A stretch of 64,000 bases of DNA, from NCBI GenBank assembly GCA_004431415.1, contig QPMI01000062.1, forward strand, positions 310,001 to 374,000. The letters run 5' to 3'. A model generated the notes under the pieces. It was given only the letters and a program-made list of their open reading frames with translations, searched no databases and was not told where the DNA came from. A program made the position numbers and the translations under genes. Below, one piece after another: positions 1,888 through 55,208 of this stretch. How positions within the stretch are numbered: the stretch's first letter is position 1; every line of letters begins with the position of its first letter. The DNA is from Cyanophora paradoxa CCMP329 (lineage: Eukaryota; Plantae; Glaucophyta).

Positions 1888-4670
1888 ATGCTCCTCTGCA
1901 CGACCCGGTACGACAGGGAGCAGCCCTCGTCGATCGGGCTCTCCAGGACCGGCGAGCGCCTCGCCCTCGGGTTGTGCGTTCCGCCGAGCGGTTCCGCCCC
2001 CAGAAAACGATCTGTCGCGCGTAAGAGCTGACCATGTCGTGCCCGAGCGCAGACGAAAGGGCATCCACGTCGTCGAGGTCGGCTCGCTGTGGGAGCTCGG
2101 GTCGAAGAAGACACTACTGCCCTCGCCGAACGCGCACTGGGACGTCGGATCGCTCGAATGGAACCCGCACCCGGCGCGCGCCTCGCTCATCGCGTCCTCG
2201 GTACGGCCGCCCCGTCCGCGTACGCTGCCCCCACCGACCCGTCGGGCAGCTCAACCAGAGCGCGCTGGTGTGGGACGCGGACGACGCGGCCAAACCGCTG
2301 CAGAGCACGCTGCAGGCACACACGCGGCCGGTGGGCGACCTCGCGTGGAGCGCGCACGACCCGAACCTCCTCGCCACCTGCAGGTTCTCCCCAGCGCTGG
2401 CGGGCGCGCCGGGCGAGCCGCCCTCACGCCCCAGATCGCAGCGCTGACCCACAGCTGCGGGTCTGGGATGTGCGGTCGCCGGGGGCACCGAGCAAGTCCA
2501 TCACTTGCGGCCCCGGTGCGCCTCTCACCCTGGGACACGCCATGGGGCCGAGCGCGCGGGGCGCAGGGGGCGTGCAGGTGAAGTGGAACCGGCGGAGCGG
2601 GCACCTGCTGGCGTCGGCGCACGAGGGGACGATCCGGGTGTGGGACCTTCGGAGGGAGAGCGGGGCGCTGGTCAGCATCAACGCGCACCTCTCCAAGATC
2701 CATGGCGTCGACTGGTGCCCGCACCGCGAGCAGGAGATCCTCTCCTGCGGCCAGGACGGCACCGTCAAGGCCCGCCCCGCCCGCCCCGCCCCGCCCAGAT
2801 CGCCCGCGCCGAGCCGGCCGCAGTTCTGGACGCTGAACTCGCCGCGGGAGTGCGCGGCGGAGCTGCTCCTGGGGGTGCCCGTCTGGCGCGCCAAGTACAC
2901 GGTGCGCCACACCTGCTTCGCCTCACGCTTGCTCCCGACCAACTCCCCCCGGCAGCCGTTTGGGGAGGGCCTGGTGACGGCGGCGCAGCGGGGCGACTGC
3001 AGCGTGCGGCTGTGGAGCCTGGCGGATCTGGGCCAGCCGGTGCACATCTACAGCGGGCACGGCGAGCCCGTGCGGGCCTTCGACTGGCGGCCGGCCCGCG
3101 GCGAGTGGCAGCTCGCGAGCCTCGCGCGCGACCACACGCTCAACCTGTGGCGCGTGCCCCCGCACCTCATCGCCGCCTGCTGCCCCGCCGGCTCCGGCCG
3201 CTCCGCGCTGCGTGGCCCCGCTCTCACGCCCCCCACCTCGCCGCTCCTGGGGGGTGCCGCCCCGCCGCCCGCCGCTCCCCTGCCCCACGTGGGGAGCGAG
3301 GGGTCCATTGCCCCTCCGCCGGCACCCATCGCACGCGTCCGCTCGGAGGGGGCCATCCGGGCCCCGTCTGCGCGCCTCGGGCGGCGGCCCTCGCCGCCCC
3401 GCGGCTTCCCGCCCGTCGCGGAGGACGCGCCGACGCGCTCCGAGCCGCCCTGCCGCCCCGCGCACCTCCGGCGGTGTCTTCGCCCCCTCGGGCGTCCTGG
3501 TCTGCTGGGGCCCCGCCCTCGGCCCGAGCCCCGGCGAGGCGGCGGCCGCCGGCCCCTCGCGCCCCGCCGCTTCCGAGTCCGACGCCTCCCCGCGCTTCTC
3601 GGTGCGCCCCGCCCCGCCCCGCGCCCTCCCGCCGCCTCGCCCACGCCGCGGGGCAGTCGGACGCGTTCATGCCGCCGTCGGACGAGGACGGGGACCTGCT
3701 GCTCCTCCTCGCCCCGCCCCGCCGCTCCCGCCTCCCCGCCCGCTGGGGCCCCGACCGCGCCGCCGCCCCCCGCGTCGCCCTCGTCGACGCGGGGCCCCTC
3801 CTCCCCTTCAGCCGCGAGCTCGCCGCCCGCTACCGCCCGCCCCCGCCGGCCGCGGCGCCCCCGCCGCCGCCGAGGCCTGCCGGAGCAACGCGGCCGTCGC
3901 GGCGGGGCGCGGCGGCCGGCGCAGGCGCAGGCGTGGCGGGCGCTGGCGGCGCTGCTGGAGGGCGGCCCGTGGGGCCCCACCCGCTGGGGCAGGGCGTCGC
4001 CCCGCGCCTCGTGCGGCGGGCGCTCGCCGAGGGCGACCTCCAGCACGCGGCGCTCTTCGCCGCCTTCGCGGACCCCGCGGGGCCCCGAACCCCGGCGACG
4101 GGCCCGGCACGGGGTCGGGGCCCCGGAGCCGGCGCCCGAGCGCGACGCCCTCGCGCTGCCGCCGGCGGCCGGCCCGGCGCCGCTCGTGGCCCCGGGGAGC
4201 GGGCGGCGCTGGCGGCCGTGCGCGCCGCCTACGCCGAGCTCCTCTTCCTCACCGGCACCCCTCCCGAGAAGGCCCGTGCCCTCCTCGCCCCCTCCAGCCC
4301 CGCCCCCTGGTGGCTTTGCCCCCCCGCCGCCCCCGCCGCCCCCTCCCCCGTCCCCGCCGCGCCCCTCGCCCCGCGGCACTCCTCGCGGGGCCAGCGCTCG
4401 CGGGGCCGGCAGGAGGGGCCCCGGTGGGAGCCCCACGCGGGATCTCTCTGGACGCACCCGCCGCCCCACGCGCCGCACAGCGGGCAGCCGTCGCCGGCCT
4501 CCTCCGGATCCGGACCCCAGCCGCAGGCGGCGCCCCTCCCGCCCACCACCTGCTGCTTCTGCGCACGCACCCTCTCCGCGCCCCACGCCCTCTGCGACGG
4601 CTGCGGAGGCGTCGGGGCCTCCCCCCTCGGGCCCGCCCCCCTCCCCGCCCGCGCCGCCGCCCGCTTCTAG
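1888..4670 (+). CDS. WDR59: WDR59/Sea3-like GATOR2 WD40 subunit
   Basis: WDVGSLEWNPH, LQAHTRPVGDL, VQVKWN, AHLSKIHGVDW, PVWRAKYT-PFGEGLV, PVHIYSGH and PRTSGGVFAPSGVLVCW match the motif order of WDR59; C-terminal CxxC...CxxC; apparent frameshifts in the GC-rich middle. Confidence 0.88.
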
Positions 4671-4736
4671 GGATAGTGCTCTTTGTTGATATACTTAGTA
4701 GGAAGCGACAGAGAGAGGCGCCGGCAGGTGGCGGGG

Positions 4737-5714
4737 TCAGCCGGCGGGCGTGCCGATCGAGGACATCATGCTCGTGTTCTGGAGGGGTCTGGCGGACGGT
4801 GAGGCCAGAAAGGGGCGGCCGCGGGGCCGAGCAGCGCGGCCAAGGCGCGCACGAGGCGATGCCGGTGATGGCGAAGCGCTCCTCGCGCAGCGCGGGGCGG
4901 ATCCGGTGCATCGGCTGCCGGCGGGCGAGTCGGACAGGCGCCCCGAGGCGCGAGGTGGGGGTAGGCGCACGACGGAGAAGGGCCGCTCGCCGGTGTTAAT
5001 CTCGACCTTCACGAGCCCCTGTGTGTTGTTGAAGAGGGTGGGGAGCACCTGGCAGGGCCCGCGGGGTCAGGCGGAGGCGCGGTGCGGGGGCGGGGGGGTG
5101 GGGCGGGGGCCGGAAGGGGCGGGGTGCGGTGCCGGGGCACCTCGTCGGGGTCGAAGATGCGGTCGGCGTTGTAGAGGAAGCCCATGAGGCTGCCGGGCAT
5201 CGAGGGCGGGTACTCCTCCGCCTCGTTGAAGTGGGTGAAGAGCATGCTCTTCGTGTGCGGGTCGTAGAGGAGGCCGATCGTGTCCCCCTCGCCCCACGTC
5301 CGCTCGCTGTACTTCTCCGCCAGATACCACGGCTCGGCCCCGTGGAACGTCGAGCCGCTGCGGAGGGCCCCGCGTCAGGCGCGGGCGGTTCAGGCGTGAG
5401 GCGGCCGTTTCAGTTGCGCTGGGGCAGGCCCGGCGATGCCAAATGCGCACCTGGGATCCAGGACCAGCGCTCCGGTCTGGCCCAGCTCGCCGGGGGGCGC
5501 GAGCCCAAACAAACACTGCCCACGGAGGAACTTGACCTCGACGTAGGTTGTCGTGCGCTTCTCCATCCTCCGTTGCACTTGGTGCGTCGCCCGCGGCATC
5601 AGCGTGACGACCTGCGCGGCGGCGGTTGAAACTGAAGCCGGGCAAAGCTAAACTGATGCCGCGAACCTGCGAATCTTGCGGGGGCGGCGCTGGCGCCTCG
5701 TCTGACGTCGCCAT
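4737..5714 (-). CDS. SPRY-domain protein
   Basis: Spliced: YVEVKFL...WGEGDTIGLLYD...VLPTLF...VKVEINTGERPF, fitting the SPRY consensus (GDxIG, VxxNxGxxPF); start approximate. Confidence 0.7.
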
Positions 5715-6039
5715 GTGCTGGATGTTCTCCTGAATGCCCCCACTATCTCCTGCCGGCCGTAACTGATGCTAAGCTAAGGCGATGCTTCGCGTCCGGTGGA
5801 GCCGGAGCTTGCAAACGATTAGAGGTACACTGAGAAGGCTAATGCAGTTAGACCAGCGTCCTTGGCTCGCAGGCTACGGTTCTTCGGTTCGATTGAGGAG
5901 CGAGCGTACCCCAATTCAAAACCCCCCGAAACGTTCGGCGCCCAAGGCGGGCTGCCCAGGCCCTGCCGGCGCTTGGAAGCACGAAAGCAGGCATTAGGTG
6001 CACAGTTAGCACCACATCGATGGACCTGTAGCAGCCGGA

Positions 6040-9000
6040 ATGTCGATCAGCGAGCGGCAGCAAGACACCGAGCTCATCCTTCGCTTTCAGCCCGTAGACG
6101 TCGATTTCCTGTGCCTGCAGCTTAGGAAGCGGACAAACAGCCTACGCGCGCTCGATCTGTGGTGCGTCGCCGAGTCATGCGCCTCATCGGAAAAGCTCGA
6201 CCGGCTCGCCAGCGCCGAAGGACTGCTGGAGAGCAGCTATTTGTGCTTAGCTAGAGAGGGAAACGCTACGAGCCCGCATGCCGCCGCTGACGCTCGGTTT
6301 AGGTGCTGCAGGTTGGACCCTGCCACAGCCGCGCCGCTCTCCCGGGCTCTCAGCAGGGCGCTCTCGCTCCAGTTCCTCGACCTCGGCGCGAACGCGCTCG
6401 GTGCGTGGTCTCCAGCGCCTCGGCAGCCGAGCCGCCCTCACGCGCTTGCAGGGGACGCTGGCGCCGCCGAGCTCCTTGCCGCCATCCCGCCGCAGCTCCA
6501 GGGGCTTGTGCTCGACAAGAACAGGCTCGGGGACACCGCAGGCAGGGCGCTCGCGCAGCTCTTGGCCACGCACGGCGCCCTCGTCAGCGTCAGCGCTAAG
6601 GACAACCGCCTCGGGAACGCGACCGCTGCGGCGATAGGGGAGGCGCTGTGCCAGAACCCGCACTCGGTCCTGCATAGCCTCGACCTCTCGGAGAACCAGA
6701 TCGGCACGGCGGGGGCGCAGGCGCTGCTCGAGGGAGTGCAGCGGAGCGAGAGCCTCGCGCGCGTCGAGCTGCAGGGGAACCTCATCGCCAACGCCGGCGT
6801 CCTCGAGGACATACAGAACGCCCTCAACATCACCGCGAACTCGCTCGGTCCGGCCTGCGCGCGGCCCCGGCTGCCGCCCGCCCCCACTGAGGCCGCCCGC
6901 AGACCTCTCGGCTGGCAGCGGCTTCCCGATCGCAGAGGCCCGGCCCCTCAAGGAGCGCATGGTGCCCGCCGCGCCGTAGAAGCCCCGCGCCGCCGCCCAG
7001 CGCCCACCGCGCCCGCAGATGCGGAGGGGGAAGCAGGTGCCGCCGCCGCACCGGAGGAGCCCGCCGTCCTCGCCCCTCGACTCCTCGTTCTTCTCCGCCG
7101 CCTCGCCGCCGCGGCGCCAGGCGGGGCGGTCGGGCGAGCGGAGCCGGCTGGAGGGGAGCCGGCTGGAGCGCTCCGGGGCCATCTCGGAGAGCGAGGCAGA
7201 GGCGAGCCGGGCGCTCTGGGCGCGCGCCCAGGCCGACTTCTGGCGCCGCGCCGCGGCCTCCGAGGCCTCCGGCGAGGAGGAGGAGGAGGACGAGGGGGAC
7301 GAGTCGACGGTGCTGGTGCTGCGGGGCGGGCGCGGGGGCGGGGGCCGGGGCGGGGGCGAGGACCCGCTGGAGGAGCTGGCGCGGGAGCTGGACGCGGAGG
7401 ACGAGGCGGAGGAGGCGGCGCTCAGCCGCAGCCGCGCCTCCTCCGCGGGGGCGCCCCTCGCGAGCCCCGAGCGCCGGCGCCGCCTGGGGGAGATCTGGCG
7501 CGAGGCCAGCCGCCAGGTCCGCGAGCGCCAGGAGCAGGCGCGCCTCCAGCGCCTCAAGGAGCGCCCCCGGCGGCCCCGCCTGCCCCACTCCCCCTCCTCC
7601 TCCTCCGCCTCCGAGGCCGCGTCCCCCGAGCGCCCCCCGCCGCCCCACGACGAGGCGGGCTACGGCGCCGACTCCAGCCGCCTCTACGCCGCCCCGCGGC
7701 CAGCCGGCCCCCGCCGCCACCGCGAGCACCGCTCCGCCGCCCCGCCCCGCCCCGGACTCCCCTCCCCGCGGCCCTACCGCCGCGGGGCGGCCCCTCGGCC
7801 CCGCGCCGCCCCCGCCCCAGCCGCGCGACCTCTCCCCCTCTTCGGCCCTCGAGGAGCCGCGCAAGCCGCCGCCCCTCAACGGGGGCGTCCGCGGCGGCCC
7901 GCCGCCCCCGCGCCGCCGCGAGGCGCCCCGCCCCCCGATCCCCTACCCCTCCTTCCTCCAGACCTCCGTGGAGAGCGCCTCCTCGGCGCCCCCCGGGGCC
8001 CACCCCGTGACGATCTCGATCGGGTCGCCGGGCCACCTGGCCCCGCCGGGCTTCCACGGGACGGCGCAGGCGCTGGGGCCGGGCCCGCCCCCCTGGGGCC
8101 TCCACGGCCCCTCCCTGCTGAACGCGTCGGCCATCAGCGAGCGCTCGGCAACAGACTACGGCGAGTGGTCCCTCGCCGAGCCCCTCGCCGCCCTCCCGCA
8201 GCAGGCCGCCCGCGCCGCCCCCGACAAGGCCCTCGACGAGGCACGCCGCGCCCGCGAGGCCTCCGACGAGGCCGCCGCCGCCGCCCGCTCCGCCCTCGCC
8301 GAGTCCGAGCGGCGCGCGGCCGCCGCCGAGGCGCGGGCGCTGTCGGCCGAGGAGCGGGCGGCGGCGGCGGAGGAGCGGGCGCGGGGCCTGGCGCAGGCGA
8401 TCAGCGAGGGCCCGGCGGGCGGCTCCGAGGCGGCGGAGGGCGGGCGCGGGCGGCGGAGGAGAAGGCGCGGGGCGCGGAGGAGCGGGCGCGGGCGCTGGCG
8501 CTGGCGCTGCAGGAGGCCCGCGAGATGCTGCGGCGGGCCCCCGCCGGCGCCGAAGAGGCGGCGCGGCTGGCGGCGGCCGTCGCGGGGGGCGCCTCCTCCG
8601 CCGAGGACCGCGACCGCCTCGCCGCCCTCCTCAACGCCGGCCAGGCCTGGGAGTCCGCCCCGCGCCCGCAGGCTCGAACCGCGCCCCCGCTCACGCCGGC
8701 GCAGGATGGAGCAGCTGCGGGGCCAGCTGCGGGAGCAGGAGGCGGAGCTGCTGCGGGTGCGGGAGGCGCTGCTGGCGGGGCGCGAGGAGGTCGCCGCCTG
8801 CCGCGCCGAGATCGAGGCGCTGCGGGCCGCCAAGGAGGACGAGGCGCGGGCGCTGGTCGAGCGCTGGCGGCTCTCGGACGAGGCGAAGGACCGGGCGATC
8901 GCGGAGCTGCGGGGCCAGCTGGGCGAGCGCGACGAGGTCGCCGCGCTCCTCGCCGACGTCGAGCGCATGGTCGGCGCCCGCACCGAGATGGCCCAAGCCG

Positions 9001-39350: not shown

Positions 39351-39752
39351 AAAGGGCTTCAGCCAGACTTAGATATCTGTTAGAACTTGGCTAGGTTAGA
39401 ATGCTTTCTCGTTCCTGTCTTGCGATCGGGGCGCCTGTACGTCTACAAATCCAAATGCGACACCCTCAGCACTTGCACGTGCACGTGAAACCAACCCGCC
39501 AGTGACCCTCACACCCTAAGCCTGGTCGGAAAAGTTATCGTTCATGAAGGCACATGCCAGGATGAATTCAATGTTGAAAGAGAGGGACCAGCATTTTGTA
39601 CAAATACATCGTACGGGCCACGAAGATCGCGGCTCCGACGCATCGACAAACCACACAGGGAAAGGAAGCGGAACTACCTGAGCCTTCTAAAACTCTCGGG
39701 AAGGATGGGGTAACGGAGCAGCTGCAGATGCGCGGCGAGGAAAAGGAGCCGT

Positions 39753-44799: not shown

Positions 44800-47700
44800 A
44801 TGCCGCCACGATATTTGCAAGGTGAGTCAAGCCGAGCGTCGAGCGCGCGAGCTGTGTCACGCGGCGCGTGTCGCGGCTAGCGAGGCACCGAACACCTGCG
44901 CAGGTTCGATCGTGCTCGTGAAAGAGAAGGATAAGAACAGCAAGGGGGTGAGAAGGCGATCCGCTGCCCTGCGGCTCTGCGAGCTAAAGTGCTACGACGG
45001 CGCAGGTGCCCGTGTACCTTGGCCGCATTCTGCAGTCCACACCGGACCCGAAGCATGGTCGGCAAATGCCGCGCCCGGCCGTCCGCTGCCGTCGCTGACG
45101 GCGAGCTCGAACATCCAGGCATCCTCTACCAAATCCACTACGTGAACTGCAACCCGAAGTGGGGCGACTGGAGGCCGGAAAGCGACCTTATCCCGGACTC
45201 AACTGAGAACCGGGTCAAGGTGAGCTCCCCGCCCGTCGCCGCCGGCCGCGTGCTGAGCGGGCCGCGTCGGCAGTACAAGTACGAGCCAGTCTACGAGGTG
45301 CGCCCCTCGCGAGTCCCGAGCAGCAGGGCGCGGCCGCCGTCTGACCCGCCCGCGTCTCCCGCTAGGTGGAATCGATCGTCGGCAAGAAGGTGCCGCCGCC
45401 CGGCCGCCGCGCCGCCGCGCCGCCGTCGCTCCGCTGAGCGGCGGTCTTCCGCAGATCGAGCACAACGTGAGCGCCGCCATGTGATGCCTCGCGAAGCGCC
45501 GCCCGCCGCCGCCGAGCGGTCGCGCCGCGCCGCAGGGCATCTTCTACAACGTGAAGTACTTCGGCTGGCCGAATCCGGAGTGGAACAACATCGAGAACCT
45601 GTCGGGGTGCGCGTCGCGGGGTCCGGCGAGCGGTGCCGCGGTGCCCCTCCGAGCGCGCGGCAGGTCGGCCGAGTCCGTGGAGGAGTACGAGAGGCGGCAC
45701 GGCGGCCGCGCGTTCGACGAGCTGCTCGCCGAGTCCGCCGCGATGAAAAACACGTCCATCACCTCCCTCATCACGTCCGCGCCCCGCCCGCCCCGCCTCG
45801 CCCCGGCCCCCCGGCCCCCCGGCCCCGCCGCGAGCCCCGCGCAGGGCCTCTGTGTACGGCACCCACAAGGGCGCCAAGAAGGCCAAGGCAAAGGCCAAGG
45901 CGCCCCCGGCCGTCTCCGCCGTCCGCGTCGTCCCCTCCTCCTCCTCGCAGGCCCCCGCCGCCCCCGCCGCGCCGGCCCCCGCCCCCTCCGCCCCGCAGGC
46001 CAAGAGGCCGCGCAAGAGCGCCGACCCCGCGCCCGCCCCACCGGCGGCCTCCGCTCCTTCCCAGACTCCCCGCTACATCATCCCCGGCCACTTCTCCACC
46101 GCCCCGGCGCCCGCCCCCGCCTCCTCCCCCCCGCCGGCCCCGCCCCCGCCCCGCCCCCGCCCCCGCCCCCGCCCCCGCCCCCGCCCCCGCCTCCGTCCCC
46201 TCTTCGTCCCCCTCCTCCTCCTCCTCAGCGGCGGGGGCGGCGCCGCAGCGGCCGCTGGCGGGCCCGCTGCCGGTGGTCGTGCTGATGCTGTACGGCCCGT
46301 TCGTGGCGACGTGCCCGATCACGCTGGCGCCGAGCGGGACGGACGCCTCGGGGGGGGCGGTGTACGCGGGGGACACGCCGGGGACGCGGCTCCCCGGGCA
46401 CGTGCCCCCCGACGCCGGCTTCGGCGTCCTCGTGGCCCTCGCCCAGCAGCCCCTCGCCACCCTCTTCTTCCCCTCCCTCGCCGCCGCCGACTCTGACCAG
46501 GTCCCGCCCCCCGCCCCGCCCCGCCCCAACCGCCCCAGCGCGAGCGGCGCCCGAGGGCTCCCCGGCAGCCGCACGAGGCGACGAGCGGGGCCGGCGACGT
46601 GGCGAGCTTCCAGTTCAAACGCTCCATCAACAGAGCCGGTGCGCCCCGCCGCCGCCCCGCCCCGCCGCTGCCACCGCCGCGCGCTGAGGCTCGGGTGGGC
46701 AGGGGCGGTGCAGGTGACGGTGGAGGTCCTCTCGCTGCGGCTGGCGCCGGCCCTCCTGCGCGCCGCCGTCGTCTCCCCCGCCGCCCTCGCCGAGCGCTAC
46801 CCCCGCATCCGCTGCGGGGACTCGCCGGGCGACTGGGCGCCCCTGGGGACGGCGGTGGAGGCGCAGAACGCGTTCGCGCACGCGCTGCTCCAGAACGCGC
46901 GCCTCCGCGACGTCTTCCAGCGCGACTCCGAGAACGCCGCCGGCACCCCGCACTGCGCGCCCGCCCGCCCCGCCCCGCCCCGCCCCACCGCCCCGCCGCC
47001 CCGCCCTCCCGCCCGCTCACGCCTCCCGCAGGGTCCTCGTCGTCGGCGGCGTGGTGGCGCGTCGTGCTCGTCTCGTGCCAGATGCCGAACGCGGTGCTGG
47101 GGGCGCTGCAGCGGCGGCGCGCCAAGCTGCTCGCGTGGACGCTGGTGCACGCGGGGGAGGACCGGGACGGCTGGGTCCGCCGGGACGCCGCCCTCGCCAC
47201 CGAGCTCAAGTACTGGCAGGCCCGCCCTCGCCCCCCTCTTCTTCGCCCCCCGCCGGCTCTGACGGGGCGCCGCAGAGCATGGGGAAGTGCTCGCTGGCGC
47301 GGGCGTACGCGGACGCGGGCGGGGTGGGGCGCTCGCGGATCGACGGGGACGCCTCGGGCGCCCTCGGCCTCGTCTTCTTCGGCGCCCTCGACCTCGAGTG
47401 CAGGCGAGCGCGCCCTCGCCCCCCACCCCCCCCACCCCCCACCCACCCCACCCCCCACCCCACCCCACCCCCCACCCACCCGCCCACCCCACCCCACCCC
47501 ACCCACCCACCCCTTCCCCCCCTCCCCCCCCCCCTCCCCTCCCCCGCCCCCGCCCCTGCCTTGGCCCCCGCCTTCGCCCCCCGGCTCACTCGGCGGCAGG
47601 TTCGGGGGCCAGTACGTGACGGGGGGCCGGGACGCGCTGCGGGAGGAGGCGGAGGAGGCGGCGCGGGCGCTGGCGGACCCCGCGGTGCCGAACCAGGACG

Positions 47701-48047
47701 TCCTGCGCCGCCTCTGCGGCCTCCTCACCGACTGGTCCGCCATCGTCATCTCCGGTGCCCCCGCCCGCCCCACCCTCGCACTCCCGGCCCCCGGCGAGCC
47801 GCCCCCGCAGGCGGCATCAGCTCCTTCCTCGCCCGCAAGGCCGGCAGGGGCTACCGCTTCGGCGGCCTCCTCGTCCAGCCCCCCGCCCCGCAGCGCGCCC
47901 CGCCGGCGCCCCACCGTGAGACCGCGCCCGGCCCCGCACCCGTGTGCATGGCGCGCCCGTGATGGCCGCCCCGACCGCCGCGCAGAGCCGGCGTACGCGC
48001 AGCCCTACCAAACAACACCGCACATCGACCTCACCGCCGACTGCTAG
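44800..48047 (+). CDS. Chromatin reader: Tudor-knot/chromo-barrel + chromodomain + unidentified C-terminal domain
   Basis: YQIHYVNCNPKWGDWRPESDL (MRG15/Eaf3-like) and YE-VESIVGKK-IEHN-GIFYNVKYFGWPNPEWNNIENL built from micro-exons; ends PHIDLTADC*. Confidence 0.8.
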
Positions 48048-48180
48048 CCGCACCAGATACATTCGTTCGCGTAACGTACAAATACAGAAAACGTGCATGG
48101 TAGGGGGAAACGCGGATACACGCTTGCGCATCATGGCATGGCAAGAGCGGCCCTGTGGGCGAAGCCCTCGCGATCGCCGT

Positions 48181-48630
48181 CGTCGCGCGCGGCACCCGAG
48201 GCCCGGCCCGGCTTCTTTGCCGGCGAGCCAGCGGGGTACGGCCACAGGGCGTGACGTCACCAGGTCGGCGTGCGCCACCGATCAGCCCCGCGCGGGGCTT
48301 CTAGCGGCTATGCTACATGTAGGAAATGGTGCCTTACGGCGGCGGCTGTTGATCCCACCGCTGCTCGGGGCCTGCTGGCCGTGAAACCGAGAAAGACGAG
48401 CGCCTCACGTGATTATTTTGAATTCACGTGAGAATTTGGACCCCGCCAGAGTCGAACCCAGGCAGGTGAACCCGCCACGCTACAGTCGGGTCTAGGTTGA
48501 ACCACGCGAGAAGTTAGTCGGGCGCTGGTTCGCCCCTGTACCATGCGCAGCCAGCGCAGGAGCGCAAATTTGCTCCCCTCAACGGAGCAACGACGCGTCG
48601 GCGCAGAAGCAGTGCAGCAGCGTAGCACCA
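48181..48630. repeat. 450-bp direct repeat, copy 1
   Basis: Identical to 49989-50438 except at 4 positions (offset 1808). Confidence 0.97.
48404..48432. promoter_or_regulatory. Twin TCACGTGA E-box/G-box palindrome (copy 1)
   Basis: CTCACGTGA-TTATTTTGAAT-TCACGTGAG; a GTGACGTCAC CRE-like palindrome also lies at 48251-48260. Confidence 0.55.
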
Positions 48631-48684
48631 GCGTAGCAGCGGGGGGAGGGGGGGAGGGAGGGGAGGAGGGGGGGAGGCAGAGGG

Positions 48685-48718
<34 letters not shown>

Positions 48719-48885
48719 AAAGGCGAGGCGAGCGGCCGGGCAAGGCGGGCGGGGTGGCGAGGCGGACGGGTGGGGTGGAGAGGCGCGCGGGTGGGGTGGC
48801 GAGGCGCGCGGCGGCACCAGGCGGGCGCGCGGGCAGGCGAGGGTGGCGCCGGGCGGGGAAGCGGGAGAAGAGGCAGGTACCCGGT

Positions 48886-49290
48886 GGCGCCGGGCCCTGC
48901 ACATTGCCTGCGCATGCGCAGAGACGCGGCGTCAGCTCGCCCCGGACAGCGGCCGTGCGGGGGTGGGGCCCAGCGGGGGCGGCAGGGTCAGGTGCACAGC
49001 ATGCAGGAGCGGCGGGGAGAACCTGGAGTCGACGAAGCTGAAGCAGCCGGCGGGCGGCGGGCGCCGGGCCCTGCGCATAGCCTGCGCAGCTGCAGGGCCG
49101 AGGCGTCAGCTCGCCCCGGACAGCGGCGGCGCGGGGGCGGGGCCTAGCCCGGCGCGGCGTACTGGGAGTGCTAGCAGCTGCGAATACTGCGACGCTGCCA
49201 CCCTCTGCCACGGAGCGCGGGCCGCGGGTCAAGCCACGCATACGTGACGCCGAGTCTGCAGACGTGAAGCCACGCATACGTGACGCCGAG
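48886..49290. repeat. Internal repeats in the spacer between the 450-bp copies
   Basis: Imperfect pair of about 88 bp at 48886-48974 and 49060-49148; perfect 24-bp pair AAGCCACGCATACGTGACGCCGAG at 49231-49254 and 49267-49290. Confidence 0.85.
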
Positions 49291-49988
49291 GTCAAGAGTG
49301 GCTCACCGCCATCACAGCCCGTCTGCTTGAACCGGAGTCCGTCAGAAACCGAGAGCGTAGGCGGAGCTCGAGGCCGCAGCCGGAAGGCACCGGAGCGAGG
49401 GTTAGTGCATGCACGAGAGCCCGGAATCCGTTGTCAGAACCCAGACAGAGCGGAATGCTGCGCGGAAAAAAGGACCGCAGCACGTCCGCAGCACGTCCGA
49501 GAGCCGCGTTCTCTGGCCATGCCAGGGCACGCGAAGTCCCGGGCCGACGCCTCGGCTGCGACAAAGTTGAAAGCGAGCGCGAGGCGTGCGTACGCGTGTC
49601 CTCTCTCCTGCGAAGGGATGGCACGCCAGACACGTGCACTCCGCTAGCGCGACGCAAGAAAGCCAAAGCGCGTGCTGGATGCGAAAGTACCAGATCGAAT
49701 CACTCGAATTCGATAGCAGGGCGACATACGTGGCACTGACGTGCTCGTTGAACCCAGCCGACAAGCAGCTTTGCCTCCAGCTACGTGCAGGTCTGTCTGT
49801 CTGTGCTTTGCTTTCTGAAGGTGGTACAGCGTTTAGCTTGCTGAGGCGTACGCTAGCTGACGTGGACCCACGTACCGTGGCACACGCGGGGCTAGCGTTC
49901 TGGGGGAAGCACGCTTTCTTCGCGGGCCGGGGGCGCCGGTGCTGAATGCGGCTCCGAGCAGCGGCCGTGCGGTCGAGGCCCTCGCCGC

Positions 49989-50438
49989 CGTCGCGCGCGG
50001 CACCCGAGGCCCGGCCCGGCTTCTTTGCCAGCGAGCCGGCGGGGTACGGCCACAGGGCGTGACGTCACCAGGTCGGCGTGCGCCACCGATCAGCCCCGCG
50101 CGGGGCTTCTAGCGGCTATGCTACATGTAGGAAATGGTGCCTTACGGCGGCGGCTGTTGATCCCACCGCTGCTCGGGGCCTGCTGGCCGTGAAACCGAGA
50201 AAGACGAGCGCCTCACGTGATTATTTTGAATTCACGTGAGAATTTGGACCCCGCCAGAGTCGAACCCAGGCAGGTGAACCCGCCACGCTACAGTCGGGTC
50301 TAGGTTGAACCACGCGAGAAGTTAGTCGGGCGCTGGTTCGCCCCTGTACCACGCGCAGCCAGCGCAGGAGCGCAAATTTGCTCCCCTCAACGGAGCAACG
50401 ACGCGTCGGCGCAGAAGCAGCGCAGCAGCGTAGCACCA
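49989..50438. repeat. 450-bp direct repeat, copy 2
   Basis: Near-identical to 48181-48630; ends about 300 bp before the bHLH-LOV ATG. Confidence 0.97.
50212..50240. promoter_or_regulatory. Twin TCACGTGA E-box/G-box palindrome (copy 2)
   Basis: CACGTG at 50214-50219 and 50233-50238; GTGACGTCAC at 50059-50068. Confidence 0.6.
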
Positions 50439-50736
50439 TGCGGCGACGCAAGCGCGCGCGGTAGTGCTGGCATCCCACCGACCTAGGTGCGCATGGGCGA
50501 CGCGCACTTCCGGGACGTTTAGAGATGCTGGCCGGAGCTAGAGGGCGGCCGGCGGGATCCGCGGCGGCGCTGGGCCGCGCGGCGGCGGCGTGCGCCGGCG
50601 CCGGCCGCGGCCGCCGCGTCGCGCGTTCCACGCCGGCTCCCGGGCGCCGCCCGCCCCGCCGCCGCCCGCCCAGAAGGATGCGCATGCGCGAATAGAACCT
50701 GACGACCTCGCTTGCGCGGTGCCCCTCGCCGCAGAA

Positions 50737-53700
50737 ATGAGACATGAGACTCGAGGCGGGCTTGCGCAGCCTCAGCCGGGACAGATGCCCATGGAAAGGA
50801 TGGACATCGGCGGCGGGTGCGCAGAATACTATCGTAGAGACGAGGTGAACTATCTAGGCCAGCAGTGGCCGTCCCCCGTGATTGCCATGGCGGCCATGCA
50901 ATTGCAAATGGCCGCCTCCCAAGCTTCCTCGGGCGGATCAAATCTCCCTCGAGACCCCAGCAGGCGGACCTCCCTACGCAGCGCCCCCGGAACGTGCTCG
51001 GACCCTCGCTAACTCTCGCCTCTCGGTGCGCAGCGGCGATCTCGGCGTGCGGGACTGGAGCTCGCAGCGGAGCGACGCGGGAGGGGGCCGCCGCCCGAAC
51101 CCGAGCCCCCCGCCGGGCCAGACGAAGCGAAGGGCGGGCGAGCCCTCTGTACAGCAGGGCCCGGCGCCCAACGCCGGCCTCGCGTCCATATCCCACTACC
51201 CCTCCGCCTTCCACCAGCCGGCCCACCAGCCGGCCCACCCGCCCCCCCCGATGCACATGCCCCCCGCCTTCCTCCCCTCCCTCTCGAACCCCCCGCGCCC
51301 CAGCCCGCCGTCCTCGCGCGACGGCGACCTCCCCTCGGTGCAGAGCGTACCCATCCCCCACGGCCACGCCAGCGACGGCGCCCGCCCCGTGAGCATCCTG
51401 GTGTCCCACTACAGCAGCCCGCGGGAGGAGCCGTCGGCCTCGCCGGTGATGCCGTTTCGAGAGCAGCAGCAGCCGTCGCCGTCGCCCTCGCAGGGGCCGC
51501 CGCAGGAGCAGCGGGCGCTGCCGCCGAAGCCGAAGAAGCGGGGCCACTCGGAGATCGAGCGGAACCGGCGGGAGGCGATCAACGACCGCATCTCCGACCT
51601 CAAAGACGTCCTTGCCATACCCCCCGTGCGCCCCCCAGGCCCCTAGGGGCCCGTCACCCCCCTCCGTGGCCCCGGGCTGACGGGGCCGGCGCCGGCGGGC
51701 AGAACGCGCCGACGCTGATATCGAACAAGACGAGCATCCTGGGGACGGCGGTGGAGCAGCTCACGACCCTCGTTCTCGAGAACAAGGCCCGCCCTCCCCC
51801 CGCCTCCCCCCTCCGCCCCGCCACCCCGGCGCCGCTGACGGCCCGGGGGCGCGCGCGCAGTCGCTGAAGATGGAGCTGGACCAGCTGCAACGGGAGCTCT
51901 CCAAGCTGCGCGTGCGGGCGGAGAAGTCACAGCGCGCCGCCGCGCACGCCGGCGGCGGCAGCAGCGGCAGCGGGGGCAAGGACAACGGGAGCAGCTCAAG
52001 CAGCACGAGCGGGAACGGGCACGGCGGGGGCGGCAACGGGATCGCCTCGTCCAACGGCTCGTGGTCGAACGGCAACGGGGAGCGCGGGGAGGCGGGGCGG
52101 CGGGGCGAGGGGGGCGAGCGCGAGCAGCGCCCGGGCTCCCGCTCCGGCTCGGACGAGTGCGCCCCGCCCCGCCCGCCCCTCTGCGCCCCGCCGCCCCCGC
52201 CCCTCACGCGCGCCGCGCTCGCAGCTCGTCGGAGGACGCCGGGATGGGCTCCAACGGGGACAACAGCAACGGGGAGAACAGCACCGGCGAGGGCTCCAAC
52301 GGCAACGGCTCGCCGCCTCTCATGGGGGACTCTGAGGAGAGCCCGCCCCGCACGCACTCCAACGCGGCCAGCGCCGGCACCAGCCTCGGCTCGTCGTCAG
52401 AGGGCGCGGCCAAGCGGGCGGCCGGCCCCGGGCGCGAGCGGCGGGACGAGGCCGAGGGGGGCGGGAGCAGGCCCTCCTCGACGGGCAGCATGCGCGACGA
52501 CCCGCCGTGCGCCCTCCGAAGCCCCCCTCCGACGCGGCCGACGCTCGGCTGACTCTCTCGGCAGGGGCGAGGGGTCGCTGGCGCTGCCGGAGGGCCCGGC
52601 GCGGGTCTCCCCCTCGGCGATCTGGGCGGCCGACTGCGAGGTGGAGAGGATGGGGGCGATGGACAGCGTCGAGGACATGCTCACCGAGTACCCCGAGGGG
52701 CCGCAGGCCGCCGCCAGCAAGCGCCCCCTCACCCTCCAGGAGCTCATGCACGCCGGCAACGGCGCGGCGGCCAAGTCGCCGCTGGCGCAGGCGGGGGCGA
52801 CGCGGCCGACGCAGAGCTCGCCGCACGGCTCGAGCAGCTCCGGCTCCTCGGCCTCGGGCTCGGGCTCGCAGGGCAACGGCAACGGCTCCAGCGGCAGCGC
52901 CGGCCACGGCTCCCGCAACGGCCACGGGAGCACCTCGAGCGGCACCGGCAACGGCGCCAACGGCTCGAGCAGCCTCTCGGGGGCCTCATCCCGCACCCCG
53001 CCCGAGCTCCGCGTGCGCCCGGGCCCCTCCCCGCCCGCCCTCGGCCTGCCTGACCCCGCCGCCGGCCCCCACAGAGCCTGACGCTGGGCCCCGAGCGGGA
53101 GTTCCTGAAGCGGGGCGAGCTGGGCTCCATGTCCGGGATGATCGTCTCGACGACGGGCCCGAACGTCCCCTCCTCCAACTCGTCCGGGGACAACGACGAC
53201 TCCAAGTCCTCGGGCGGCTCCTCCTCCTCGGGCGCCCGCACGCCCCTCTCCTCCTCCTCCGGCAACGGCGGCAAGGGCAACGGCAACGGCTCCGGCAGCG
53301 CCGCCCGCGAGGGCGGCACCGCCCGCTCCAAGCAGCGCGAGCGCGCCCGCGCCGAGCGCGAGGGCAAGAAGCGGGCCGGCGAGGGCCCGGACGCGGAGCT
53401 GGCGGCGCCGTACACGGTCTCGTGCCGGGGCTTCAGCGAGGAGATGCTCGCGAGCACGGCGCGGCGCCTCGGCCGCACCGCCGCCGAGGTCGACGAGGGG
53501 GCCGGCCCGGGCCCCGCCGCCTCCCCCAGCGAGTCCGCCGAGGAGGCCCCCCGGGGGCGGGCCGAGGCGGCGGAGGCGATGCTCTCGGTGGACCTGCCGA
53601 TGGCCCACGTCTCGATGCGCCAGTTCTTCGCCATCAACCTCAAGATGGCCCTCGACGCCCTCCTCGTCGCCGACGAGGCCCCCGACGGCTCGGGGCCCCT

Positions 53701-55208
53701 CATCCTCTACGCCTCGGACGGCCTCCAGCGCCTCACCGGCTTCTCAGCCGGCGAGCTCCTCTGCCGGCCCCTCGCCGCCCTCCAGGGCGGGGCCCGCGGG
53801 GCCGTGCAGGGCGCGGAGCTCGCGGAGGCGGCGGCGCAGGCGCGCCTCGACGGCGTGCTGCGCCTCGCGGAGGTCGTCTGCGTGCGCAAGGACGGGCGGC
53901 CGTTCTGGGCGCTGGCGTGCCTGCAGCCGGTGAGGGACAGCGGGGAGCGGACGACGGGCCTCGTGCTCGCCCTCATGGACGTCACGGGCCTCAAGCGCCC
54001 GGGCTTCCGTCCCGACGACTCCTTCATCGCGTGCGCCCCGCCGCCGGCCCGCTCGCTGGGCCCCGCCTCACACCCTCGCCCCGCAGGTCGTACACCGGCC
54101 TGAGCGGCGGCGAGGACGGAAGCGGCGGCTCAGGCGGCTTCCCCCCCGCCTACCAGAGCGGCGCCTTCAACTTCTCGCGCTTCAAGGCCCGCCGCGCCCC
54201 TCCTCCGCCCCCGCCAGGCCCGAAACCCTCCTCTGACCTCCCCCGCAGAACCTCTCGGCGCAACAGCCGTCCTCGCCGGAGGGGGCGGGTGAGGCGGAGG
54301 CGGAGGGCGGGGGCGCCGGCGGGGCGCACCACGGGCGGCTGCTGCAGGCGCTGGCGTCGCTGCTGGCGATGGCGCTCTCGACGCTGCTGGTGACCAACGG
54401 GGCCGACGACGACTACCGCATCGCCTTCACCACCCCTGGCTACCAGATGGCGCGCCCCTTCGAGCCCCGCGCCCCCGCACACACTCCGGGCCCGGCTGAC
54501 GGCGGCGGCGGCGCGCAGATGACGGGCTACTCGAAGCGGGAGCTGCTCGGCAAGAACTGCCGCATGCTGCAGGGGCGCGACACGGACCGCGCCGCCTGCC
54601 GCCTCCTCAAGCGGCACCTCGCGTCGGTGCGCGCGGCGGGCCGGGCCGTGCCGGGGGCGCGTGCGTGCGTGCCGACGCGGGCGGCAGGGCGAGCGGAGCG
54701 TGCTGGCCGAGCTGGTCAACTACCGCAAGGACGGCGGCGCCTTCGTCAACCTGATGCACATCGTCCCCATCCCGTCCCCCTCTGGACAGGCCAGCCCCCC
54801 CGCCCTCCCCCGCCCCGCGCCCCGCGCCGCCCCGTGCGAGGCCGCGCGAAGGTCACTCGATACGTGTCGGTCCACACGGATGTCACCGCGTTCGCTGCGC
54901 CCCGCCCGGGGCCCCCCGCCCCGACGCCCCCCGGTGCCTGGCCCGGTGAGCGCTTCCCCTCGCCGTCCCGCAGAGCCTCCCTAGCGCGGGGCGGCGACCC
55001 TCACGAGTCGCCCCGCGCGCAGCCCCAGCCCCAGCCCCAGCCCCCGTACAACCCCCAGCCCCAGTACCCGTCCCCGCCTCCGCCCCGGGGGCAAGCCCCG
55101 GCGCCAGCCCCCCCGAGGGCGGCGGAGCGTGAGATGAACGCCGGCCGCGGCGAGCGCGACGCTTTCGGTTGCGACCTCGCCACGCGAATGGACGTTTCTC
55201 CAGCCTAA
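50737..55208 (+). CDS. bHLH-leucine zipper transcription factor with a degenerate PAS/LOV and an intact LOV domain (putative blue-light receptor), 12 exons
   Basis: KKRGHSEIERNRREAINDRISDLKDVL...NKTSILGTAVEQL; zipper LVLENKSLKMELDQLQRELSKL; PAS ILYASDGLQRLTGFSAGELLCRPLAALQG...RKDGRPFW; LOV MTGYSKRELLGKNCRMLQGRDTD...VNYRKDGGAFVNL. Confidence 0.9.

Follow-up and report, generated by a model that had tools for sequence, protein, structure and literature searches.

Duplicated upstream module with twin E-box palindromes at a bHLH-ZIP-PAS-LOV gene of Cyanophora paradoxa: a possible cis-regulatory region

Does a putative light-sensing transcription factor of the glaucophyte alga Cyanophora paradoxa bind its own promoter? 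The question is raised by a 64-kb window (the whole stretch of DNA analysed, 64,000 nucleotides) in which a gene encoding a bHLH-ZIP-PAS-LOV protein (tig00000241_g20994) is preceded by a segment present twice, each copy carrying an inverted pair of the palindromic octamer TCACGTGA. From these features a preliminary description had proposed an autoregulatory, clock-like and light-gated loop, the binding sites of which had recently been doubled in the promoter. We know of no light-signalling or clock circuitry described for glaucophytes, and of nothing reported on ACGT-containing elements in this group.

The repeated segment, previously put at about 450 bp, was recovered by repeat search, MAFFT and blastn as a 458-bp core in two direct copies (48174-48631 and 49982-50438, period 1808), resulting in an A-B-A layout with a 1.35-kb spacer between the two modules (Table 1). 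The core copies differ by five substitutions (48180/49988, 48222/50030, 48230/50038, 48545/50353 and 48614/50422), and this 1.1% divergence suggests a duplication that is young or has been homogenised. The left edge of the module is more diverged and includes a 6-nt indel, with the alignment reaching 48146/49960 (485 aligned positions, 96.9%). No third copy was detected by blastn in the window. Copy 2 stands 300-470 bp ahead of two candidate start codons of the bHLH-LOV gene, an in-frame ATG at 50737 and the beginning of the public CDS model at 50908.

Table 1. Coordinates of the features discussed, in positions of the 64-kb window.
Feature	Position	Strand	Remarks
Upstream proline-rich gene, last-exon start	47986..48047	+	Candidate stop codon 48045-48047; rest of exon is 3' UTR running into copy 1
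Module copy 1	48146..48631	+	Core 48174-48631; 3' UTR, or read-through transcript, of the + strand gene upstream
CRE-type palindrome GTGACGTCAC, copy 1	48251..48260	.	Sequence scan
Twin E-box palindrome CTCACGTGA-N11-TCACGTGAG, copy 1	48404..48432	.	29-nt inverted pair
Left spacer	48632..49149	.	G-rich low-complexity, poly-G of ~30 nt (about 48686-48715), then two repeat units
Right spacer	49150..49959	.	Transcribed; 11 ACGT cores, all of ACGTG type
Module copy 2	49960..50438	+	Core 49982-50438; the promoter-proximal copy
CRE-type palindrome GTGACGTCAC, copy 2	50059..50068	.	Sequence scan
Twin E-box palindrome CTCACGTGA-N11-TCACGTGAG, copy 2	50212..50240	.	29-nt inverted pair, 11-nt AT-rich spacer
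bHLH-ZIP-PAS-LOV gene, tig00000241_g20994	50737..55208	+	Public protein model P0001, 1193 aa

Contigs from outside the assembly, obtained from two DNA runs of different studies (X1 and X8) and from RNA data sets of two studies (X15 and X17), contain three of the four junctions of this local segmental duplication and both of its variant haplotypes. Two distinct left junctions of the module were seen in both DNA and both RNA data sets. Among the DNA contigs of X1 and X8, 47900-48210 joins the upstream 3' UTR to the module, 49448-50018 joins unique spacer to the module, and a single 1245-nt contig (49989-51233) spans copy 2 into the bHLH-LOV gene, the C/C variants of copy 2 being linked to the gene on DNA contigs. 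RNA contigs 48181-48623 (X15) and 48181-48560 (X17) are free of mismatches to copy 1, whose variants they carry in cis, all four in X15 and the three spanned in X17. The two-copy local duplication is genuine.

An assembly artefact, in the form of a collapsed or mis-joined repeat or of two alleles stitched in tandem, had been named beforehand as fatal to the proposed loop, and we consider it very unlikely. It would have to account for the two left junctions found in four data sets, for the phasing of copy 1 variants on RNA contigs and the tie of copy 2 variants to the gene, and for an assembly that is PacBio-based, at about 75x, from a probably haploid organism (PMC6704402). The point in its favour is the junction of copy 1 with the error-prone poly-G (48631/48632), which no short-read, Illumina-derived contig among those listed covers: DNA depth is 0 over 48461-48647 after graph cleaning, and contigs break at 48633-48724. 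Such a missing junction is what tip-clipping beside an unsequenceable poly-G would give. A look-up for independent assemblies returned no record of the antisense ORFs across the copy 1/poly-G and copy 2/gene junctions.

The contig joining the module to the gene has a k-mer depth of 91.2 in X1 and 67.9 in X8, close to that of the flanking contigs (62-103 and 47-86, respectively), which indicates about two copies of the module rather than tens. A high-copy dispersed repeat or transposable element, also foreseen as an objection, was rejected on this near-single-copy depth (91 and 68, with flanks at 47-103), whereas the spacer repeat reaches 3900-7200. The latter comprises two 89-nt units of a high-copy dispersed repeat (48886-48974 and 49060-49148), and k-mer depth over 48835-49208 amounts to 5355-7234 in X1 and 3937-4535 in X8, compared to about 50-100 in flanking contigs. 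Summed depth is still raised at 49209-49447 (494-742 in X1), and the right spacer is at single-copy depth from 49448 onwards, within DNA contig 49448-50018. An LTR retrotransposon or TRIM was likewise discarded, given that the repeat ends are not TG/CA, the flanks differ (GGCAAG vs TGCGGC), the purine tract comes after the left copy, whereas an LTR element would have it before the right copy, no tRNA-like primer-binding site is present and copy number is low.

The intergenic gap between the bHLH-LOV gene and its upstream neighbour, a proline-rich gene (ORF 46599-48047) with no Pfam match, measures about 2.7 kb, ~3.5x the C. paradoxa mean of 770 bp (PMC6704402). Spliced RNA contigs of 1421 nt (X15) and 1389 nt (X17) enter the last exon of the proline-rich gene at 47986, directly after a CAG acceptor, and copy 1 starts 127 nt after its stop codon. 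The copy 1 RNA contigs share 30 nt with the spliced mRNA contig 47986-48210, making copy 1 continuous with the upstream mRNA. Copy 1 forms part of the upstream gene's transcribed 3' UTR, which leaves copy 2 as the only promoter-proximal one. The claim of binding sites recently doubled in the promoter was therefore too strong: the duplication is real, low-copy and apparently young or homogenised, but one of its copies lies outside the promoter. RNA contigs 49163-49364 and 49335-50018 extend over the right spacer, and because copy 1 and the spacer are both covered by RNA contigs, the boxes may themselves be transcribed instead of preceding a transcription start site.

Transcription of copy 1 in continuity with the upstream mRNA also bears on the idea that the palindrome acts as RNA, folding into a hairpin (9-bp stem, 11-nt loop) in the upstream 3' UTR and/or in the bHLH-LOV 5' leader. 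The predicted fold does contain the 9-bp hairpin, but any DNA palindrome folds in this way, the fold z-score is only -1.85 with 10 of 200 shuffles folding as well, and no Rfam match was obtained even at E up to 10, rendering this reading extremely improbable. Membership of a structured RNA family was rejected on the same z-score, with no tRNA found and no Rfam match either at gathering score or when E was relaxed to 10. A tRNA or SINE reading of a GTTCGA-like stretch in the module was dismissed too, neither ARAGORN nor Rfam returning anything and the fold being unremarkable.

The sequence elements that had prompted the proposed loop are borne out in both copies, each containing an inverted octamer pair around an AT-rich 11-nt spacer and a separate palindrome (Table 1). 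The octamer TCACGTGA occurs four times in the 64 kb, always in the module (48405, 48424, 50213 and 50232), against an expectation of 0.18 and with 0 of 100 shuffles reaching four, a count to be read with the caveat that the duplication halves the number of independent motif events. Local shuffles of copy 2 gave an expectation of 0.00 for the two octamers observed there. All four octamers present the CACGTG core with T at -4 and A at +4 that defines a class-B bHLH-ZIP E-box. Within each pair the core centres are 19 bp apart, the hexamers being separated by 13 bp and the octamers by 11 bp, and the copy 2 boxes stand 500-700 bp upstream of the bHLH-LOV ATG. The CRE-type core TGACGTCA is found in the window only at 48252 and 50060, and a search of JGI metagenome contigs with the 29-nt twin-box element yielded 0 exact matches.

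The unique ~830 bp to the left of copy 2 (49150-49981) constitute the densest ACGTG stretch in the window, with 11 ACGTG cores observed against 1.5 expected and 0 of 1000 local shuffles reaching 11. The fifth CACGTG reported earlier at 49631 was found here together with the reported TACGTG and GACGTG cores, and the cluster includes TGACGTG at 49737 and 49858. Some of the cores sit inside small local repeats (49236-49292 and 49477-49498), the removal of which leaves 9 independent cores vs 1.5 expected. A window-wide excess of CACGTG was set aside as evidence: the 23 occurrences exceed the 10.5 expected from dinucleotide shuffles, but an order-4 Markov model expects 20.5, and this lack of enrichment under a high-order background runs counter to a regulatory reading. 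The excess over chance is confined to the octamer pairs and the local cluster of ACGTG cores.

As a further observation counter to a regulatory reading, one fold-back event is enough to create an inverted repeat from a palindromic octamer. A neutral origin without function would have the inverted pair written by such a fold-back or palindrome-writing mutation, and the A-B-A layout produced by repeat insertion or repair. The single indel between the copies (48168-48176) follows the 3-nt X-rc(X)-X palindrome pattern expected of this process, TCG becoming TCG-CGA-TCG, a high-copy repeat and poly-G occupy part of the spacer, and several ACGTG cores are part of small local repeats. The twin boxes themselves, however, fall outside the 3-nt rule, the excess of independent ACGTG cores persists after removal of local repeats, every one of the 11 ACGT cores reads ACGTG, and the position upstream of a gene for an E-box-type factor is suggestive. 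Overall, we regard a purely neutral origin as unlikely.

Spliced RNA contigs place introns of the bHLH-LOV gene at 51626-51702, 51787-51860 (GC-AG), 52507-52564 and 53013-53074. Its product, P0001, gives an HLH match of 29.4 bits in Pfam (cut-off 20.7) and two PAS_9 matches. The basic region, KKRGHSEIERNRR, has His5, Glu9 and Arg13, invariant across eight glaucophyte relatives, and heptad leucines (L-x6-L-x6-L) follow helix 2 in SLKMELDQLQRELSKLRV, the combination that characterises class-B bHLH-ZIP proteins. The nearest solved structure is MITF (E 4e-06), followed by SREBP-1a, MYC2, Max, Cbf1 and TFEB; of these, MITF, SREBP-1a, Max, Cbf1 and TFEB are known to bind CACGTG/TCACGTGA. Taken together, these sequence features mark the basic region as E-box-competent and uphold the earlier identification of a bHLH-LOV protein with His-Glu-Arg at positions 5, 9 and 13. 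The second PAS domain (LOV2) contains the canonical cysteine motif of a LOV photosensor (GKNCRMLQG), and the first (LOV1) has only a degenerate CRPLAALQGG, leaving one LOV domain canonical and one doubtful. The same genome encodes at least three paralogous bHLH-LOV proteins, with tig00000622_g2630 and tig00000319_g24129 among the paralogous genes; the bHLH and LOV domains are better conserved in P0002, P0006 and P0016 than in P0001, the most divergent of the family. To our knowledge, bHLH-ZIP-LOV proteins appear in databases only as 'putative LOV domain-containing proteins', with no known target site. The AML78xxx database entries presumably derive from Glantz et al. 2016. A search over a limited paper collection returned nothing relevant on bHLH-LOV proteins, or on bHLH and LOV domains together in glaucophytes, and light/dark expression time courses of C. 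paradoxa have been published with six (PMC6704402) and twelve (PMC6374488) time points.

The explanation we tentatively favour, at slightly less than an even chance, is that the segment represents an ACGT-element cis-regulatory region of the bHLH-LOV gene embedded in a two-copy local duplication. Copy 2 and the unique sequence to its left would form a single ACGT-core cluster, in which eleven ACGTG cores accompany a CRE palindrome and a pair of perfect TCACGTGA boxes, acting in cis on the bHLH-LOV gene. Its putative readers would be class-B bHLH-ZIP dimers, drawn from the small bHLH-ZIP-LOV family and possibly including the gene's own product, and/or bZIP factors. Copy 1 would be a young or gene-converted duplicate, now residing in the upstream 3' UTR and cut off from copy 2 by the poly-G and the high-copy repeat. 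That the boxes are bound, by which factor, and that they control the downstream gene, we infer.

Self-regulation by the bHLH-LOV protein is a plausible candidate; an equally good fit is obtained with bZIP factors, with paralogous bHLH-LOV proteins or with a palindrome of neutral origin. Putative control by G-box/CRE-binding bZIPs or by paralogous bHLH-LOV proteins, amounting to cross-regulation or ordinary light-responsive control through functional boxes, is somewhat unlikely taken by itself. It is consistent with the perfect CRE palindrome in the same module, with the better-conserved bHLH and LOV domains of the paralogues, and with the dominance in the adjoining cluster of TGACGTG and ACGTGG/ACGTGC cores, classic bZIP targets among plant ACGT elements; on the other side, CACGTG with T/A flanks is a site more characteristic of bHLH-ZIP proteins than of the GBF-type bZIPs of plants.

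The original proposal of a light-gated auto-feedback or clock-like loop, in which the protein would occupy a recently doubled set of twin TCACGTGA boxes in the promoter of its own gene, is hypothetical and in our judgement improbable. The class-B H/E/R basic region closest to MITF/TFE-type binders of TCACGTGA, the canonical cysteine motif of LOV2, the location of the window's only TCACGTGA sites upstream of the gene's own ATG, and the precedents of TFEB/MITF and RITMO1 all point towards it. They are opposed by the three paralogues and several bZIPs that could read the same sites, by the position of copy 1 in the 3' UTR of another gene, 2.3 kb from the ATG, by a centre-to-centre spacing unlike that of clock tandem E-boxes, and by the divergence of this particular paralogue (HLH 29 bits, LOV1 motif degenerate). 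In its most specific form, two bHLH-ZIP dimers on the 19-bp-spaced TCACGTGA pair would become coupled through LOV dimerisation driven by blue light, creating a single-protein light-gated feedback loop with a second copy of the element supplied by recent duplication. This version is quite unlikely; if true, the archaeplastid lineage that branched off first would possess a simple circuit for light input or timing.

Comparison with known systems reveals partial likenesses to each. MiT/TFE factors (MITF, TFEB, TFE3) share the H-x3-E-x3-R basic region, prefer T/A-flanked CACGTG, and include TFEB and MITF, known to autoregulate through such boxes, which here too lie upstream of the factor's own gene. 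In contrast to P0001, a glaucophyte protein, they have neither PAS nor LOV domains, and the boxes agree with the CLEAR 10-mer consensus GTCACGTGAC only in the central 8 positions. The CLOCK:BMAL1 E1-E2 elements are similar in placing two close E-boxes upstream of a bHLH-PAS-type gene, an arrangement that by analogy suggests cooperative binding and feedback. The likeness drawn in the preliminary description fails on spacing, those elements being 6-7 bp apart and the hexamers here 13 bp, with both boxes perfect and in inverted repeat; moreover, the animal bHLH-PAS proteins lack the zipper of this bHLH-ZIP gene product. Neurospora WC-1/WCC and the stramenopile aureochromes likewise unite a LOV photosensor and a DNA-binding dimerisation domain in one protein, the latter being a GATA zinc finger in WC-1, a bZIP in aureochromes and a bHLH-ZIP here. 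The module shares the perfect TGACGTCA, an aureochrome/CRE-type site, with the TGACGT sites of the bZIP-LOV aureochromes, of which we know none in glaucophytes. The dense ACGTG cluster with CACGTG and TGACGTG upstream of a light-related archaeplastid gene resembles plant ACGT elements (G-box, C/G hybrids), read mainly by bZIPs (HY5, GBFs) and PIF bHLHs. Diatom RITMO1 is an algal protein with a bHLH followed by PAS-type domains that has been proposed to act in an autoregulatory loop, and a two-PAS bHLH-PAS protein has been noted in the archaeplastid Galdieria (PMC6600994). Unlike P0001, proteins of the RITMO1 type contain a single PAS domain and lack a canonical LOV motif, and no description of their DNA target was found in the literature examined.

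The 29-bp twin-box element offers a concrete and cheap probe of whether bHLH-ZIP-LOV proteins are light-switched E-box factors. Should other factors read the boxes, or none, the locus would be an ordinary duplicated intergenic segment; should one bHLH-ZIP-LOV protein feed back on itself, the family would constitute a natural optogenetic bHLH switch.

Repeat search, MAFFT alignment and blastn against the whole window confirmed the claim of the preliminary description that a segment of about 450 bp is present twice upstream of the bHLH-LOV gene (tig00000241_g20994), revealing two direct copies spaced 1808 bp apart. Five substitutions separate the near-identical cores (48180/49988, 48222/50030, 48230/50038, 48545/50353 and 48614/50422). 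The alignment extends leftward to 48146/49960 through ~28 nt of weaker similarity with one 6-nt indel (485 positions, 96.9%). Outside the core, the similarity of the left flanks is marginal (1/300 shuffles), flank comparison showed the right flanks to be unrelated, and blastn identified no third copy in the 64-kb window. The sole indel between the copies sets TCG in copy 2 (49982-49984) against TCG-CGA-TCG in copy 1 (48168-48176), an exact micro-triplication of the form X, revcomp(X), X.

Coordinates of the duplicated module, its motifs, the upstream gene and the spacer
Feature	Position (copy 1 or single)	Position (copy 2)	Strand	Remarks
Near-identical core	48174-48631	49982-50438		458 bp; MAFFT, blastn
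Twin-box pair CTCACGTGA-N11-TCACGTGAG	48404-48432	50212-50240		one per module copy
Palindrome GTGACGTCAC	48251-48260	50059-50068		one per module copy
Upstream gene, last exon	from 47986		+	from contigs; candidate stop 48045-48047
Spacer part 1	48640-48720			G-rich low-complexity; poly-G run of ~30 nt
Spacer part 2	48886-48974, 49060-49148			two 89-nt units of high-copy repeat, 87% alike
Spacer part 3	49150-49981			transcribed; single-copy from 49448 by DNA contig; summed depth raised at 49209-49447

The duplication was assessed at contig level, using Logan contigs from two DNA runs (X1, X8) and two RNA runs (X15, X17), each from a different study. One DNA contig terminates at 48210, 30 nt beyond the copy-1-specific base 48180, a second at 50018, 30 nt beyond base 49988, and a third starts at 49989, crosses copy 2 and reaches 51233, which is the expected de Bruijn pattern for one shared segment entered from two different left flanks. 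The depth of the module-to-gene contig (91 in X1, 68 in X8; flanking contigs 62-103 and 47-86, respectively) fits a module copy number of about two. The possibility raised earlier that the module is a high-copy dispersed repeat was thus not borne out; such a repeat lies instead in the spacer, where k-mer depth at 48835-49208 is 3900-7200, against ~50-100 in neighbouring single-copy contigs. Variant copies elsewhere of the dispersed repeat region (48835-49400) omit 49213-49364.

RNA contigs spanning 48181-48623 (X15) and 48181-48560 (X17) are identical to copy 1 (0 mismatches), the former covering all four variant positions and the latter stopping short of 48614, and gene-linked DNA contigs carry the C/C variants of copy 2; hence, both haplotypes exist. 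Contigs from X15 and X17 skip four introns of the bHLH-LOV gene (51626-51702, 51787-51860, 52507-52564 and 53013-53074), indicating that these runs are genuinely RNA. In X8, the contig running into the gene has copy 1 bases at 50030 and 50038, which could be due to bubble popping in the contig graph, strain polymorphism or gene conversion between copies. The two different left flanks and the presence of both haplotypes make it quite improbable that the duplication is an assembly artefact, a reading favoured by the fact that no listed DNA or RNA contig runs from copy 1 into the poly-G: contigs break at 48633-48724 and the junction is found in the assembly alone. We attribute the missing junction to poly-G dropout and tip clipping. 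The assembly is PacBio-based, and the organism probably haploid (PMC6704402). All short-read contigs, DNA and RNA, break at the G-rich tract, which complements C-rich repeats in the coding sequence of the upstream gene (47400-47600).

The copy 1 RNA contig overlaps a spliced mRNA contig of the proline-rich upstream gene by 30 nt, placing copy 1 in the 3' UTR of that gene or in read-through (RNA depth 6, versus 16 for the mRNA body). Hence, the duplication of the putative binding sites stands, but their doubling in the promoter was overstated, since copy 1 lies beyond the repeat, in the 3' UTR of another gene. The two genes are ~2.7 kb apart, and the mean intergenic distance in the Cyanophora paradoxa genome is 770 bp (PMC6704402).

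Both copies contain the inverted box pair and palindrome previously described. All 4 instances of TCACGTGA in the window fall inside the module (0.18 expected), a count in which, through the duplication, two motif events count as four. TGACGTCA is confined to the module within the window, and no local dinucleotide shuffle reached the two TCACGTGA octamers of copy 2. The third part of the spacer is the densest ACGTG stretch of the window, with 11 ACGT cores, 11/11 of the ACGTG type (1.5 expected; 0/1000 local shuffles reach 11), nine of them independent after setting aside two in small local repeats. The window-wide CACGTG excess (23 observed, 10.5 expected from dinucleotide shuffles) was dropped as support, since an order-4 background expects 20.5 and comparable ratios are seen for many palindromes that contain AT. 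At 39476-39487, a head-to-tail CACGTGCACGTG, itself of the form CAC-GTG-CAC-GTG, may be the product of a palindrome-writing process and not a binding site.

Our preferred, if tentative, explanation is that the bHLH-LOV gene has a regulatory region made up of the twin boxes, the CRE palindrome and the ACGTG cluster next to them. A neutral origin, with nobody reading the region, appears unlikely; it is favoured by the sole inter-copy indel, which follows the palindrome-writing rule, but the twin boxes do not obey it. That the palindrome serves as an RNA hairpin is a minor and very improbable rival. The putative regulatory region might conceivably be read by paralogous bHLH-LOV proteins or by bZIPs; the CRE and TGACGTG cores it contains are classic bZIP sites.

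Protein analysis used the public model P0001 (1193 aa; EukProt EP00741 Cyanophora paradoxa, gene tig00000241_g20994), not exons joined from the window; it was recovered by representative search with the PAS-containing ORF as query and is collinear with the exons in the window. Pfam identified one HLH and two PAS_9 domains. The basic region, KKRGHSEIERNRR, presents His5/Glu9/Arg13, heptad leucines follow helix 2, and the solved structure closest to the bHLH-ZIP is MITF (E 4e-06), followed by SREBP-1a, MYC2, Max, Cbf1 and TFEB. GKNCRMLQG is retained in the second PAS; the first PAS motif is degenerate. Relatives with a bHLH and two canonical LOV domains (P0002-P0016) were found in Glaucocystis, Gloeochaete, Cyanoptyche and Cyanophora itself, and the basic-region H/E/R residues are invariant across the glaucophyte relatives. 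Judged from sequence, the MITF-like bHLH-ZIP and these residues make the earlier premise of CACGTG recognition reasonable, probably with T/A flanks. That the gene's own product reads the region, as in the feedback loop of the preliminary description, seems doubtful, and the self-loop reading is rated lower still. Together with P0153, the bHLH-ZIP proteins with two canonical LOVs form a glaucophyte-wide family, of which tig00000241_g20994, with its long Gly/Ser-rich inserts and degenerate first LOV motif, is the most divergent member.

The four introns share a GTGCGCC donor (GC in one), a CTGAC branch point 15-25 nt upstream of the acceptor and a CAG acceptor. A spliced RNA contig confirms 51787-51860 as a GC-AG intron, and the first intron, possibly 50965-51033, would by the public model have a second GC donor. 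The candidate start codons (50737, 50908) lie 300-470 bp downstream of the end of copy 2, and a CTGAC...CAG acceptor at 50734 with GTGCGC donors at 50078, 50487 and 50590 could accommodate an intron in the 5' UTR. GC-rich low-complexity stretches in the leader (50518-50704) and coding region (52014-52200) yield hundreds of partial contig matches at depth 1500-3100; the apparent joints there are repeat cross-matches, not rearrangements.

The suggested clock-like analogy is weak: the boxes are 13 bp apart, whereas CLOCK:BMAL1 tandem elements are separated by 6-7 bp, and the candidate factor here is a zipper-containing bHLH. MiT/TFE, Myc/Max and CLOCK:BMAL1 are well-known cases of E-box/factor compatibility and of autoregulation through such boxes; LOV-bearing transcription factors with feedback are likewise known (WC-1, aureochromes). 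Public databases list the bHLH-LOV family as unnamed LOV proteins, and no paper on bHLH-LOV proteins was found in the literature searched. Linking a bHLH-ZIP-LOV factor of a glaucophyte to a specific site that can be tested, as in this candidate pair, would be new.
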